A DNA stretch of 64,000 nucleotides from Macrostomum hystrix (taxonomy: Eukaryota > Animalia > Platyhelminthes). Below the pieces are notes generated by a model, which saw only the letters and a program-made list of their open reading frames with translations, had not been told where the DNA came from and made no database searches. The translations under genes and the position numbers were made by a program. Location: positions 2,976,001 through 3,040,000 of the forward strand of contig CATNEN010000034.1 of the NCBI GenBank assembly GCA_950097015.1, written 5' to 3'. Shown one piece after another: positions 55,581 to 62,376 of the stretch (position 1 is the first letter of the stretch; each line of letters begins with the position of its first letter).

Positions 55581-58500
55581 ATGGAGACTCAATATAAGGT
55601 GCTACTGTTTGTCAGATTTTATGTCACGGTTTTTAGACTCGAAACAGTCTAATCAAGTATAAACACAGCAGATTGTCAACAGTCTACACTCTTCACAAGG
55701 CACTGACAGTTAAAATAAAACAGTCAAGACAACTCACATATTCCTTTGAAAATTGTAAACTACTACTCAGCTTCACAATGAAAGTAGTTTGTTCGCATAT
55801 ACATTTCCAAACATCACGCGACACCTAATCGGGCATTCTATGGATTTTCTGTACAGCAGATACAGGCAGTTTCCACAGTAGATAAATTATTATTAGTAAC
55901 AGCTGATCTCGCTGGTCAACCTGTTCACAACAGAAAATGTTAGCTTTTAACATTTATTCCAATGATGCTAAAATTTCTTAACATAAATAGCGTTCCATAC
56001 ACATTGATTTGTAAGGTCTTGTTTGGTGTGTCCATAAAATAAGCTCATATTTAGCTACTATAACATAATTTTCTACTAATTGCAGTTACAACACTCCAGA
56101 TCGATTTGTGGTGCAGCCTCATCAAAATGGCAAGGAGACACTTGTTATTGACAAGCAGACTGGAGAAATATCTGTCACTAGTAAGTTTTAAATTGTCATC
56201 TGACCCTTGGTTTTCTTTACTACATATACTACCCAGTGCACAGTGATGTTTTCCGTGTTTCATCCGATGGAGTATTTATCTCCTATGATTGATATTATAT
56301 TTTTACTGCTGAGTGAACCGTATTTTCGATATAGGTTGCAGCCACTATACTGGATAATATAATTTAGGCTACTTGGTAATATTACATTTTCGTATCTCTC
56401 ATAATTTATATTTTTGACAACATATCGGCACGTTATTAACCCAACATAGCCCTGGCAAGGCTTCTAGAGTCTGGACCCACTATGCAATCTTAAGTCCCTC
56501 AGTAAATTTAGCAGTACAGGAAAGGAAAAATGTCAGTAAATTGATTTTCACGTGACCCTATTTTAATACTTCCTCCAAAGCCGACGCGCAGGCCGTCAGT
56601 CGCCTCATTGTTGGGTCACCGCCAGTCCCAATCTACGGTCTGTTAGGCGTCCTCAGATTATTATCCGGGCCTCACCTGATGATTGTGCTAGCAAGGCGCC
56701 AGATTGGCACACTGGCTGGTCACTGTCTGTGGCTAGTGGAATCGGCGGATGTCATCCCGTATTGTCGATCTACTCTGCACCTGAGCCGCGGCGCATTAGC
56801 TGATAACGATGTCTACCTGCAGCTGGTGCGAGAAGCATTACGCACTCCTGGCTACTATTTCTCCTACACAATGGATTTAACTCGCAGTGCACAGAGTGCC
56901 TATGGATATCGCGCTGCCCAGTTCACTGCAGATGAGTCAGCACTAGCGGCCTCTGCTTCTGTTGAGTCTGTGCCATTGTGCGATAGAGCGGACGAGCGCT
57001 TTGTCTGGAACTATAATTTATTGACCGAGCTGAAACCATTTGGTCGATTTGCGCTGCCTATTGTGCACGGCTTCGTGTGCATCAAAACGCTGCCATTTCA
57101 GGTACTTCTTCCTGCAAATTCAAATTCAGATACGCAAATTCAAATACCCTGTTTCATTACTCACCCATCCTTCACCTAGCCTCCCAGTTTCAGTATCCAG
57201 CCTTCCAGATCCCCAGTTTCAGTATCCAGCCTTCCAGATCCCCAGTTTCAGTATCCAGCCTTCCAGATCCCCAGTTTCAGTATCCAGCCTTCCAGATCCC
57301 CAGTTTCAGTATCCAGCCTTCCAGATCCCAAGTTTCAGTATCCAGCCTTCCAGATCCCCAGTTTTTAGTATTTAGCCTTCCAGATCCCCAGTTTCAGTAT
57401 GCAGCCTTCCAGATCCCAAGTTTCAGTATCCAGCCTTCCAGATCCCCAGTTTCAGTATCCAGCCTTCCAGATCCCCAGTTTCAGTATCCAGCCTTCCAGA
57501 TCCCCAGTTTCAGTATCCAGCCTTCCAGATCCCCAGTTTCAGTATCCAGCCTTCCAGATCCCCAGTTTCAGTATCCAGCCTTCCAGATCCCCAGTTTCAG
57601 TATCCAGCCTTCCAGATCCCAAGTTTCAGTATCCAGCCTTCCAGATCCCCAGTTTTTAGTATCTAGCCTTCCAGATCCCCAGTTTCAGTATGCAGCCTTC
57701 CAGATCCCAAGTTTCAGTATCCAGCCTTCCAGATCCCCAGTTTCAGTATCCAGCCTTCCAGATCCCCAGTTTCAGTATCCAGCCTTCCAGATCCCCAGTT
57801 TCAGTATGCAGCCTTCCAGATCCCAAGTTTCAGTATCCAGCCTTCCAGATCCCTAGTTTTTAGTATCTAGCCTTCCAGATTCCCAGTTTTTAGTATCTAG
57901 CCATTCCATCGTTCGCTGTTTAGGGTCGCAAATTTGACTACGCCCTCGTTAGTCGACGGTCCCGCCATCGCGCCGGCGTCCGCTACTACACCCGCGGTGT
58001 TGACGATTCTGGCTGCGCCGCCAACTATGTCGAAACCGAACAGATTGTAGTCGTGCCCTCCTTTGCAGGGTCGTCAGCTAGCCCTACTTTGTTCAGCTTT
58101 GTTCAGACTCGCGGCTCTGTGCCTCTGATCTGGTCTCAGTATCCGAATTTGTTGTACAAACCGACTCCGTCTTTAAGCCAGGATTGGGATCGACAATTAA
58201 ATGCATTTCTAGCGCACTTTAATGATCAGGTAATTTATCTCATTTTAATTTAAAATTTACGTTTATTTCTACTTACAGTAGAATAGTTCGTCTCATGAAA
58301 TGATGGCTCGCAAGCAGTAGACCAAAATGATGCATACTCCGTGTTTCATCTGACAATCGGCTTTGGCCAATGTTTGATGTCAAACATTTTCTTTCTACTG
58401 ATTAATTGGCATATGACAACTGCATGAGCCTATTGTTATTATGTATACAAGCCTTGTTTTTAATTAGAATTTTATTATAATATACCTACGTTCCTACTTT

Positions 58501-61500
58501 CAGTAGGGTAAAGTAACAGCGCTCGAGGTATTTAAGCTCACAGGCTACTTGCAAAATGATGCCCTTTCCGTGTTTCATCTGATTATATTGAAATGCATCA
58601 ATATTGGATGCCAAAATCTTTATATAACTGATTTTCTGCTCGTAGTCTGTGAGCCTATTTTATCACCGCATCATCCAGTGTATTACTTCACTTCTTTAGG
58701 TCCATTAAATCCTATTTTCTCGCTCATTCCCCGTCCTTCAGGCCCATTCCCCATCCTTCAGGCCCATTCGCCATCCTCACAGGCTCCCGGCTTATATGAT
58801 GCATTTCCGTGTTTAATCTGATTTTATTGACATTAGTCAATACTTTATGTTAACTATTTTATTACCACTGATTGTTGCTGAGCCTGTGATTTTTTAGGCA
58901 CTACCCATCCTCTCAGAACCAATTACCCATCCTCTCAGAACCAATTACCCATCCTCTCAGAACCAATTACCCATCCTCTCAGAACCAATAACCCATCCTC
59001 TCAGGACCAATAACCCATCCTCTCAGAACCAATAACCCATCCTCTCAGAACCAATAACCCATCCTCTCAGGACCAATAACCCATCCTCTCAGGACCAATA
59101 ACCCATCCTCTCAGAACCAATAACCCATCCTCTCAGGACCAATAACCCATCCTCTCAGGACCAATAACCCATCCTCTCAGAACCAATAACCCATCCTCTC
59201 AGAACCAATAACCCATCCTCTCAGAACCAATAACCCATCCTCTCAGAACCAATAACCCATCCTCTCAGAACCAATAACCCATCCTCTCAGAACCAATTAC
59301 CCATCCTCTCAGAACCAATAACCCATCCTCTCAGAACCAATAACCCATCCTCTCAGAACCAATAACCCATCCTCTCAGAACCAATAACCCATCCTCTCAG
59401 AACCAATAACCCATCCTCTCAGAACCAATTACCCATCCTCTCAGAACCAATAACCCATCCTCTCAGAACCAATAACCCATCCTCTCAGGACCAATAACCC
59501 ATCCTCTCAGGACCAATAACCCATCCTCTCAGAACCAATAACCCATCCTCTCAGAACCAATTACCCATCCTCTCAGAACCAATAACCCATCCTCTCAGGA
59601 CCAATTACCCATCCTCTCAGAACCAATAACCCATCCTCTCAGAACCAATAACCCATCCTCTCAGAACCAATTACCCATCCTCTCAGAACCAATTACCCAT
59701 CCTCTCAGGACCAATAACCCATCCTCTCAGAACCAATAACCCATCCTCTCAGGACCAATTACCCATCCTCTCAGGACCAATAACCCATCCTCTCAGGACC
59801 AATAACCCATCCTCTCAGAACCAATAACCCATCCTCTCAGGACCAATAACCCATCCTTTCAGGGCTGCGTTTACCTTTCCTTAATACATTGCCATGAGCC
59901 TTAAGATAAGAGTCATTAAGGACCACTCTTAATCACTATGGGTTATTCCTAAACAATCCGATTTCTTTTTAGTCCCTTGGTTTAAATCCCGTGAGTAGAC
60001 TCTTCTTATCATTCGCAATTTAATCCTTACAATGGTCCTTAAGGGTCAGTTCAAGCTAGCACATAGGCAATGTATTCCTTATCGCTGCTCCTATACCTGG
60101 GCCAGGTGCTCACCCGAGGCTACGGTCACCAGGTGGTTGTCAACCTGCTGGATGCCGGCGGCAAGGAGCGCGAATTGTGCGCCCAGCTCAGCCGAATGTG
60201 CAGCCTGCCTGAAGTTGCTCAGCGCTACTCGGGACTGCGCTACGAACACTTCGACTTCCACAGGGAGTGCAGCCGGCTGAGGTGGGACCGGCTGGCGTTA
60301 CTGTTGGAGCGGACTGAACCCGACTTTGATGCCATGGGATTTTTTCAGGCCGCGCTGGATGGTGAGGGAATAAGATTGCTGCATTTTATTGGGTTTAGTG
60401 TCAACCTTATTTATAGCTCCTGCCTACATGATCAGATGCCTCAATGCACATCCTGTCCCAATGCACACGCGCACACAGGTGTGTAAATCTGCCCTGACTT
60501 TCTCATGACAATTGCATGACAAGCCTTCAAGCCTATACTTTCCGCGGCTGCACCCCAAATGAAAATTGCCTCGCCGCGTAACCAATCTCAGGGACCTTGG
60601 TGCGAGAGGCAAACGCGTTTACCGCTCTGCCCCTTACCCCCATCATGTCCAAAATGTTCTTCATGAACGCTAGGATAAATATATTGAAATTTCGCCTAGC
60701 CCAGTTTGGCCGCATGCACAACCCAGTCCGTGGACTGGGGACACCGGCTCGTCAACCTAACACTAATCCCGACGGTCAGTGCCAGAGCGGTTAACGCGTT
60801 AGATTCCGCGGCGAGGCCGCGCGCAGCCGCGTAGAGAAGGCTTGGGGGCTTGTCGTGCAATTTGCGCTTTTGAGGGCCAACCTCCAAGGCACAGTGAGAG
60901 TGTATAACTGCCTGACGACTTTAAAGTCATAGCAGATGTACACACCTGTGAGCGAGTGTGCTCAGTAGTCAGCGAAATGGGCAGAAGTGGCTCCTCGCTG
61001 GCTGCGGTTCTAGTGTCACCAAAGGATGTGACATATCCCGCTGGGAATCGTATTAGGCAATTTTCTATGTTTTCTATTTCCACACGAGTTTCGTACTACT
61101 CTTCAGATTCCCTCCTAGTTAAAACGCCAACTAGAGTCTCTATTTGATAAGCATGTACATGTACAGCTGAATTTCGATGAAAGTCGGGGCTTCAGTGTCG
61201 GGCGAAAGTCGTGTAGCAGTTGGTCCGACATATACAGATGAATATTGATGAAAATCGTACGAAGATGAATGTCGATCCGTTTTTCATCTTTTGTTTGCGA
61301 CTTTCGTCTGCCCAAAATCGACCCGACGGCACCGACGCCCCAACAAGATGAAATCGGGAATAAATCGGCCCGATTTTCCCTTTCTTTGTGTCGGGCCATT
61401 TAAAGTTGAATGTCGGAGTTAGGTCCCAGCGGGATTTCCCGCAGCCCTCCTGCAATTATTATTGTTATTATTATTAATAATAATAATTAATAATAATTGA

Positions 61501-62376
61501 TTACACCTGCCCCAATTGGGTCAGATGTGCAGCCGACAGCACAGCCGCAGCTAATGCGCGGCGCATCTGAAGGCTGCGTACAGCTGTTCAGTCCACGGAC
61601 TGGGGGGACGCCACACCCACCTTCAATTATCCCAGCTAATGCTGGTACCCATTTAACAGCTGGGTGAACTGAAGCAATGCAGAGTTAAGTGTCTTGCTAA
61701 AGGACGCAAATTGTTCCAGTGGAGTCGGGAATCGAACCCCCGACCTTCAAGTCGTGAGTCCGACGCCCTAACCACTAGGCTACAACCTCTATTAACCTCT
61801 AATAATAGTTATTATTATTACTTTTATTATCACACGAATCCCGCAATCCTTCACTGTTCCCAGGCTCACCGCAGCGCACCCAGCGCTCAGTATTTCGAGT
61901 CAACTGCATCGACTGCCTGGATCGAACCAATGTAGCCCAATGCCTTCTGGCTAAGCGAGCCCTAACTAAACAACTGGCAGAGTTGGGCTTGTCGCCCCAC
62001 TCTAGCGATAAGGACAGGGACCCTGGCGGGAACAGTCTGGAAACCGCAGTCAAGCTGGCCTGGTCGGACAACGCCGATGTTTTGTCGATGCAATACGCCG
62101 GCACCGGCGCTTTGAAGGCCGACTTCACTCGAACCGGACGGCGCACCAAATCTGGCGCACTCCGCGATCTCTACTACAGCGCTATGAGATATGCCAGGAA
62201 TAACTTCTCGGACGGCTGGAGGCAGGACGCTATCGACTTGCTGCTAGGCAATTATAGACCTGTCCTAGGCGAGCCGAGTCCGTTCGCTGATGGCCGCGAT
62301 TGGAAAGTCTGGCTTCTGCCCTCTGTACTGCTGTTCGGAGTCACTATGCTCACAATGGGAGCTCTACTGCCGCCCG
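55581..62376 (+). CDS. SACM1L: Sac1 phosphatidylinositol-4-phosphate phosphatase; exons 55581-55606, 56086-56180, 56581-57101, 57924-58229, 60106-60361, 61864-62376; last exon outside the window
   Basis: [61 protein letters not shown], catalytic [12 protein letters not shown] (CX5RT), [19 protein letters not shown] and first TM helix; phases all compatible. Exon 1 has a weak donor (GTTTGT) and is less certain. Confidence 0.93.
56236..56318 (+). ncRNA. Box C/D snoRNA copy 1 (Sac1 intron 2), 28S rRNA 2'-O-methylation guide
   Basis: C GTGATGT 56243, guide TCCGTGTTTCA-T, D' CCGA 56264, internal hairpin GGAG/CTCC, C' ATGATTG, D CTGA 56309, terminal stem GTGCAC/GTGAAC. The guide complements the conserved LSU rRNA UUGAAACACGGA. 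Confidence 0.75.
57178..57902. repeat. 29-bp minisatellite (AGCCTTCCAGATCCCCAGTTTCAGTATCC), Sac1 intron 3
   Basis: Direct reading, about 25 copies. Confidence 0.97.
58322..58409 (+). ncRNA. Box C/D snoRNA copy 2 (Sac1 intron 4)
   Basis: C ATGATGC 58327, guide TCCGTGTTTCA-T, D' CTGA 58350, C' TTGATGT, D CTGA 58398, terminal CCAA/TTGG. Confidence 0.8.
58551..58639 (+). ncRNA. Box C/D snoRNA copy 3 (Sac1 intron 4)
   Basis: C ATGATGC 58556, same guide, D' CTGA 58579, internal stem TATTG/CAATA, D CTGA 58628, terminal GCAAAA/TTTTCTGC. Confidence 0.8.
58791..58881 (+). ncRNA. Box C/D snoRNA copy 4 (Sac1 intron 4), one guide mismatch
   Basis: C ATGATGC 58796, guide TCCGTGTTTAA-T, D' CTGA 58818, internal stem TATTGAC/GTCAATA, degenerate C', D CTGA 58868 (a second CTGA at 58878). 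Confidence 0.65.
58902..59861. repeat. 22-bp minisatellite (ACCCATCCTCTCAGAACCAATA), Sac1 intron 4
   Basis: Direct reading, about 44 copies. Confidence 0.97.
61454..61787 (-). mobile_element. tRNA-derived SINE copy 2, apparently full length with (ATT)n tail
   Basis: Reverse complement reads GGTTGTAGCCTAGTGGTTAGGGCGTCGGACTCACGAC..GGTTCGATTCCC (A and B boxes), central domain, 3' body and ATT-rich tail. Confidence 0.88.

Follow-up and report, generated by a model that had tools for sequence, protein, structure and literature searches.

Four box C/D units in the introns of a flatworm Sac1 gene

The window, by which we mean the whole 64,000-nucleotide (nt) stretch of Macrostomum hystrix DNA analyzed here (contig CATNEN010000034.1, positions 2,976,001 to 3,040,000), carries on its plus strand a gene for a Sac1-type phosphoinositide phosphatase, identified by comparing the translations of its exons with the Pfam SacI homology domain and with yeast Sac1 structures. 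The gene model was searched exon by exon. Within its introns we found four paralogous box C/D small nucleolar RNA (snoRNA) units, all on the plus strand and therefore sense to Sac1. Copies 2, 3, and 4 share one intron, and copy 1 lies two introns upstream. The units are listed below, each by its span from box C to box D, with the positions of their boxes and with the scores given by a sequence model of the four copies (the family model).

56243-56312, plus strand: copy 1, alone in an upstream Sac1 intron; family model 55.8 bits; box C GTGATGT, guide 56252-56263, D' CCGA 56264-56267, box D 56309-56312
58327-58401, plus strand: copy 2, in the shared intron; family model 76.7 bits; box C ATGATGC, guide 58338-58349, D' CTGA 58350-58353, C' TGATGT near 58374, box D 58398-58401
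58556-58631, plus strand: copy 3, in the shared intron; family model 79.6 bits; guide 58567-58578, D' 58579-58582, C' GGATGC near 58603, box D 58628-58631
58796-58871, plus strand: copy 4, in the shared intron; family model 77.1 bits; guide 58806-58817, degenerate C' TTATGT at about 58843-58848, box D 58868-58871

The units are built to a common plan, in which box C (GTGATGT or ATGATGC) is followed by a spacer of 2 to 4 nt, a 12-nt guide, and, directly after the guide, the D' box. On the 3' side of D' there is a short hairpin-prone stretch, then a C'-like box, an unconserved stretch, and finally box D (CTGA). Box D reads CTGA in four of four copies, and the span from box C to box D is 70 to 76 nt, which places the units in the box C/D class. 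The internal boxes are also present, D' as CTGA (CCGA in copy 1) and C' as TGATTGA, TGATGT, or GGATGC, with the degenerate TTATGT in copy 4. The last of these copies is the weakest; a C-to-A change in its guide produces a mismatch in the duplex, and its C' box is degenerate. Copy 4 may be a pseudogene in the making, or its sole use may be to cap a longer RNA at the 3' end.

The 13-nt guide motif occurred five times at one mismatch or fewer, as against 0.28 occurrences expected by chance, and none of 100 shuffles reached five. The family model matched only the four copies in the 64 kilobases (kb) of the window, with E-values between 1e-16 and 1e-23. The fifth guide-like motif, at 61276, was considered as a further snoRNA and set aside as a chance occurrence, because the family model gave no match there.

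Conservation among the copies was concentrated at one end of the unit. The segment from box C to D' was 78 to 89% identical between copies, and the rest of the unit was about 55 to 65% identical, or about 50 to 65% when the flanks are included, a level close to that obtained by global alignment of any AT-rich sequence. Since this background has diverged while the boxes and the guide were kept, the duplications are old, with selection acting on boxes and guide. The region 5' of box D is unconserved, which leaves the D' guide as the only one that looks functional. Such a pattern is what selection for snoRNA function would be expected to leave in old duplicates. A preliminary description of this DNA had called the three clustered units box C/D paralogues spaced about 230 to 240 nt apart. 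They do look genuine, with box C, guide, D', and box D retained in all copies, and the spacing between successive C boxes was measured at 229 and 240 nt, with intervening spacers of 154 and 164 nt.

Copies 2 to 4 lie in a single intron

The exons on which the placement of the units depends, and the intron that hosts copies 2 to 4, are as follows.

56586-57101, plus strand: Sac1 exon, Syja_N profile positions 1-136
57924-58229, plus strand: Sac1 exon 5' of the snoRNA intron, Syja_N 154-251, yeast Sac1 residues about 203-292
58230-60105, plus strand: host intron of copies 2 to 4, GT-AG, 1,876 nt, also holding a 22-nt minisatellite
60106-60360, plus strand: Sac1 exon 3' of the snoRNA intron, Syja_N 251-305, yeast Sac1 residues about 297-359

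In four small public runs, all belonging to one study, there are transcript contigs that include the end of the previous exon on their 5' side, cover 57922-58231, and then continue with sequence starting at 60108. When the shared GT is allowed for, the joint in the messenger RNA runs from 58229 to 60106. These runs were available as assembled contigs, from which rare species are dropped, and their library type is not on record. Across the 58229/60106 joint the Pfam profile passes from position 251 to position 251, and yeast Sac1 passes from about residue 292 to about residues 293-297. The continuity of both the profile and yeast Sac1 implies that no coding exon is missing. Together, the contig joint and the continuity of the Sac domain place copies 2 to 4 within one intron of 1,876 nt. 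The proposal that the three copies share a single intron is thus confirmed, although minor isoforms may exist, and the hidden exons that would have divided the copies among different introns did not appear, as the contigs contained no extra exon between 58229 and 60106. The distance from the copies to the 5' splice site is 97 nt, and the 3' splice site is at least 1,234 nt away.

The Sac1 introns consist mostly of minisatellites. One occupies 57183-57908 (29 nt repeated 24.9 times), a short one lies at 58725-58777 (20 nt repeated 2.7 times), and a third, at 58903-59862 (22 nt repeated 43.6 times), forms the rest of the snoRNA intron; the 20-mer is related to the 22-mer. As a pyrimidine tract with CAG after it occurs in every minisatellite unit, the introns hold dozens of motifs resembling 3' splice sites. 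Unlike the AT-rich snoRNA intron, the next Sac1 intron (60400-61860, about 1.5 kb) has a complex, GC-rich sequence, and it resembles an inserted mobile element. It contains an AT-rich, (AATAAT)n-like tract at 61460-61500 and, on the minus strand at 61720-61789, a weak match to transfer RNA (tRNA), which scores 31.8 bits with the Rfam tRNA model, whose gathering score is 29, and in which the T arm is defective. ARAGORN did not call this element, which is probably a tRNA-derived repeat or a pseudogene.

External stems around the clustered units

Each of copies 2 to 4 is enclosed by complementary sequences in its flanks.

58305-58430 (arms 58305-58318 and 58419-58430), plus strand: external stem of copy 2, 6 + 5 base pairs (bp) with a 3x1 internal loop
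58536-58548 / 58642-58654, plus strand: external stem of copy 3, 13 bp including a single G-U pair
58777-58786 / 58880-58889, plus strand: external stem of copy 4, 10 perfect bp, then a 2-nt bulge and 3 bp

In copy 2, GGCTC (58305-58309) pairs with GAGCC (58426-58430) and GCAGT (58314-58318) with ACTGC (58419-58423), and the outer helix was lengthened to 6 bp by RNAfold. The stem of copy 3 lies 7 nt 5' of box C and 10 nt 3' of box D. All three stems are located 7 to 17 nt outside the boxes. Most of their sequence would be lost by trimming as the RNA matures, so that they count as external stems as the literature uses the term. Copy 1 has no external stem. It has instead a short canonical terminal stem beside its boxes (about 56236-56241 / 56313-56318), so that the ends of every unit are closed, by a terminal stem in copy 1 and by external stems in copies 2 to 4.

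The stems of copies 2, 3, and 4 were all verified in the sequence at the positions first proposed for them. Each was present in the minimum-energy fold of its own unit, and those of copies 3 and 4 survived folding of the entire 600-nt region. To assess their significance, the energy of the flank-to-flank duplex was compared with that of 1000 dinucleotide shuffles of the flanks. The duplex of copy 3 had an energy of -29.8 kcal/mol (z of -5.7), which 0 of 1000 shuffles equaled, and that of copy 4 had an energy of -24.5 kcal/mol (z of -3.1), which was equaled by 6 of 1000.

The stem pairs were tabulated from their coordinates, as MAFFT did not register the 3' stem arms. In columns 12 to 14 both sides change among copies 2 to 4 while Watson-Crick pairing is kept (column 13, for instance, is G-C, A-T, and C-G), and compared with copy 3 the stem of copy 2 carries compensatory changes. 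In columns 6 and 10 the pairs vary by way of G-U. Covariation among three sequences is suggestive and is not proof. The stems of copies 2 to 4 are homologous through tandem duplication and are not three independent inventions. The notion of flank duplexes with some covariation is supported: compensatory changes occur in three columns, and the stems of copies 3 and 4 exceed chance, with that of copy 2 being weak. Covariation had also been claimed for the hairpins between D' and C'. A hairpin of 3 to 7 bp can indeed be drawn in each copy, with differing sequences, but in copies 2 and 3 the minimum-energy fold favors other pairings.

The guide is predicted to target a conserved site in large-subunit rRNA

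The guide equals the 5' part of LR3, a widely used reverse primer for the large-subunit (LSU) ribosomal RNA (rRNA), and is thus antisense to a conserved LSU stretch ending in GAAACACGG. It is complementary to the invariant LSU rRNA stretch UGAAACACGGA, with an 11-nt match. The arms of a published DNAzyme identify A649 of yeast 25S rRNA as the A directly after GAAAC (PMC3938493). On yeast 25S rRNA the guide forms 11 contiguous pairs, from U643 to A653, and under the fifth-nucleotide rule the fifth nucleotide 5' of D' faces A646, the middle A of GAAAC. Yeast snR18 guides A649 (PMC3938493) and human U18A guides A1313 of 28S rRNA (PMC6010090); by this equivalence, A646 matches human 28S A1310, which lies 3 nt to the 5' side of the U18 site. 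A1310 is described in recent RiboMeth-seq papers as a 2'-O-methylated site of low variability, paired with Gm1303 near the peptidyl-transferase center. As a cross-check of the numbering, there is a G at -10 from A649 in the DNAzyme context, as Gm1303 requires. We take the target segment to be identical in yeast and human and to be shared by the flatworm. The four copies are thus predicted to be redundant guides for 2'-O-methylation of the putative equivalent of yeast A646 and human A1310.

Orthology with U18/SNORD18 was considered and rejected, because the D' box is offset by 3 nt, which selects A646/A1310 and not A649/A1313, and because Rfam SNORD18 gave no match. Outside the window, a pattern scan of metagenomes for box C, guide, and D' gave 11 loci. 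The 10 that were examined all looked like chance occurrences in prokaryote-like contigs. The locus L007 adjoins an open reading frame for a histidine kinase and had no Rfam match.

Proposed maturation of the cluster

At least two sense snoRNAs with no exon between them constitute an intronic snoRNA cluster, and this is the arrangement found in the Sac1 intron. We propose that the cluster arose by local tandem duplication, that its members serve as redundant guides, and that they mature by stem-aided assembly and endonucleolytic release. We consider this account probable, though far from certain. Copies 2 to 4 lack a good terminal stem beside their boxes and lie about 1.2 to 1.8 kb from the 3' splice site. 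Efficient expression coupled to splicing requires a snoRNA located about 70 nt 5' of the 3' splice site (PMC5054931). The three copies lie more than 1.2 kb from that site, and the most economical view of their stems is as a stand-in for positional help. An external stem of 10 to 13 bp would bring box C and box D together, thereby favoring formation of the kink-turn and loading of the core proteins, and assembly aided in this way would be independent of splicing geometry. The units would then be parted by endonucleolytic cleavage within the AU-rich spacers, the nuclease being presumably of the XendoU/EndoU type, or another, rather than RNase III, and exonucleolytic trimming up to each small nucleolar ribonucleoprotein (snoRNP) would follow. 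Simple trimming by exonucleases from the intron ends cannot free three separate snoRNAs, a point on which the preliminary description is supported.

Several results weigh against this account. The flank duplex of copy 2 had an energy of -17.5 kcal/mol (z of -1.6; 69 of 1000 shuffles as strong) and is not significant alone. No snoRNA family was assigned by Rfam, whether in the whole window at the gathering score or in two sub-regions at E-values up to 10, and the top match, snoR53Y on copy 1, reached 23.6 bits against a gathering score of 43. The missing Rfam match is expected for a lineage-specific guide, and it is no argument against the box C/D class. A word search for Sac1 orthologs with the exon 5' of the intron, the range of which did not extend to full-length Sac1 proteins, found no close relative; its best matches were fragments from other animals, 62 to 63% identical. 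The contigs of the four runs cover exons only and give no coverage of the intron. The guide duplex comprises just 11 bp, or 10 bp plus a mismatch in copy 4, and the target sequence derives from primer LR3 and from the arms of the DNAzyme rather than from the 28S rRNA of the organism.

Two alternatives accept the snoRNAs and differ in what becomes of them. It is possible that only some copies are live, with copy 4, copy 2, or both decaying and being degraded with the intron, which would leave effectively one snoRNA per intron. The C-to-A change and the TTATGT C' box of copy 4 and the stem z of -1.6 of copy 2 fit this view, and features of the kind used by snoscan do not tell expressed snoRNAs from pseudogenes. 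However, every copy retains intact C, D', and D boxes, and copy 4 combines a perfect 10-bp stem with a score of 77 bits. Intact boxes on a diverged background imply continuing constraint, and we regard partial decay as unlikely, though its probability is not negligible. The main stable product might otherwise be a small nucleolar long noncoding RNA (sno-lncRNA), that is, a snoRNA-ended RNA of about 320 or 555 nt between copy 2 and copy 4 or 3. It would arise by splicing and debranching, with exonucleases stopping at the snoRNPs, and monomers would come mainly from copy 1. At least two snoRNAs per intron are the stated prerequisite of human sno-lncRNAs (PMC5054931), and this intron holds three; moreover, sno-lncRNAs lack poly(A) and would escape poly(A)-selected libraries. 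Yet introns with multiple snoRNAs in Drosophila, rice, and chicken were reported to yield individual snoRNAs, and the middle copy 3 keeps its boxes, its guide, and a private stem, an argument for selection of each unit as a snoRNA. The four runs gave no intronic contig, which is a weak argument given that their library type is not on record. We assign the sno-lncRNA route a small probability. An equally small chance is given to the broader idea of a non-classical mode of maturation, yielding either a stable and functional snoRNA-capped RNA of 320 to 555 nt or units excised by a stem-guided endonuclease. If the latter were true, multi-snoRNA introns would mark a lineage-specific processing pathway.

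The remaining alternatives concern the way in which the units would be separated. External stems could be sites of RNase III-type cleavage that excises each unit, as Rnt1p does in yeast, where this enzyme, with Nop1p, acts between polycistronic snoRNAs and, in the case of intronic U18, at an external stem (PMC10557570). Each of copies 2 to 4 does bear its own stem. However, these stems comprise 10 to 13 bp around a loop of about 95 nt that holds the whole snoRNA, and they have no AGNN tetraloop. Drosha and Dicer act on hairpins of about 33 to 35 bp or duplexes longer than 19 bp, and Rnt1p acts on an AGNN-capped stem. To our knowledge, Drosha and Dicer are the only RNase III enzymes of animals. 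The release by RNase III hinted at in the preliminary description found no support, as the stems are too short for either enzyme; a role in assembly explains them sufficiently, and we judge cleavage of this type very unlikely. Nested or recursive splicing, which would give each copy its own sub-intron, has an even smaller probability and seems to us extremely unlikely. Between the copies there are indeed juxtapositions of AG and GT with pyrimidine tracts, at 58504-58520 (cag TAGG gtaaagt) and 58692-58705 (tttag/gtccat). The second, about 68 nt 3' of box D in copy 3, comes close to the distance favorable to box C/D processing in vertebrates (PMC5054931). The contigs, on the other hand, join 58229 to 60106 directly and show no extra exon, no 5' splice site would be regenerated at the first site (about 58510), and the second (about 58699) has a poor donor. 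The introns known to undergo recursive splicing are very long, whereas this one measures just 1.9 kb, a length in which such motifs are expected by chance. As features of the intron, the two sites are candidates for nested splicing or for recruitment of the spliceosome, and they may be due to chance.

The locus adds to what is known in two ways. It gives a flatworm an unannotated four-gene snoRNA family that has no Rfam model and whose predicted target is a conserved, variably methylated site of 28S rRNA, and it adds a platyhelminth case of the intronic-cluster arrangement. It is also a natural test case, since its units can be distinguished on the box D side, lie far from the 3' splice site, and have covarying external stems. 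It is suited to telling monomers, which the endonuclease route would produce, from sno-lncRNAs.

Comparison with known systems

The gene arrangement is known from flies, plants, and birds, and every element of our interpretation has a published precedent; consequently, current models are not challenged. The preliminary description had hinted that the arrangement was unusual for an animal. This impression did not hold, as clusters, flanking stems, XendoU release, and sno-lncRNAs have all been published. Intronic snoRNA gene clusters were described in rice and Drosophila melanogaster (Liang 2002; Huang 2004, 2005; as cited in PMC2780460 and PMC2656528), and in chicken two introns each contain two snoRNA loci (PMC2770669). 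As in these clusters, the flatworm intron contains several sense snoRNAs, which are often paralogues, with more paralogues in other introns of the host; the spread of snoRNA paralogues across several introns of one host is commonplace. Unlike them, the flatworm cluster has a Sac1 lipid phosphatase as its host, and its box C/D units each have a long private external stem.

Stems formed by the flanking intron aid the assembly of box C/D snoRNPs where the terminal stem is missing, in yeast (Villa 2000) and in vertebrates (Darzacq and Kiss 2000), as summarized in PMC10557570. The likeness lies in complementary intron sequences a few nucleotides outside the mature ends that close the unit. The difference is that the flatworm intron holds a tandem array of three such units, the function of whose stems is a presumed one. 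Intronic snoRNAs can also be released endonucleolytically and independently of splicing, by XendoU in Xenopus (PMC10557570). The release of U16 and U86 by this enzyme provides an animal precedent for cleavage at U-rich sites, and the spacers of the flatworm cluster are likewise U-rich; U16 and U86, however, are found one per intron, in contrast to three here. The Prader-Willi SNORD116 sno-lncRNAs (Yin et al. 2012, as presented in PMC5054931) likewise derive from introns with more than one box C/D snoRNA. They differ in having two units rather than three, and SNORD116 is an orphan, whereas the flatworm units have a predicted canonical rRNA target.

A further parallel concerns U18 (SNORD18, snR18), also an intronic guide on the same LSU rRNA helix (GAAACACGGACC) with paralogues in several introns of its host (U18A to U18C in RPL4). 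In contrast to U18, which targets A649/A1313, the D' box of the flatworm units lies 3 nt further along, with A646/A1310 as the predicted site. In yeast and Xenopus, U18 is a classic example of endonucleolytic, stem-dependent release.

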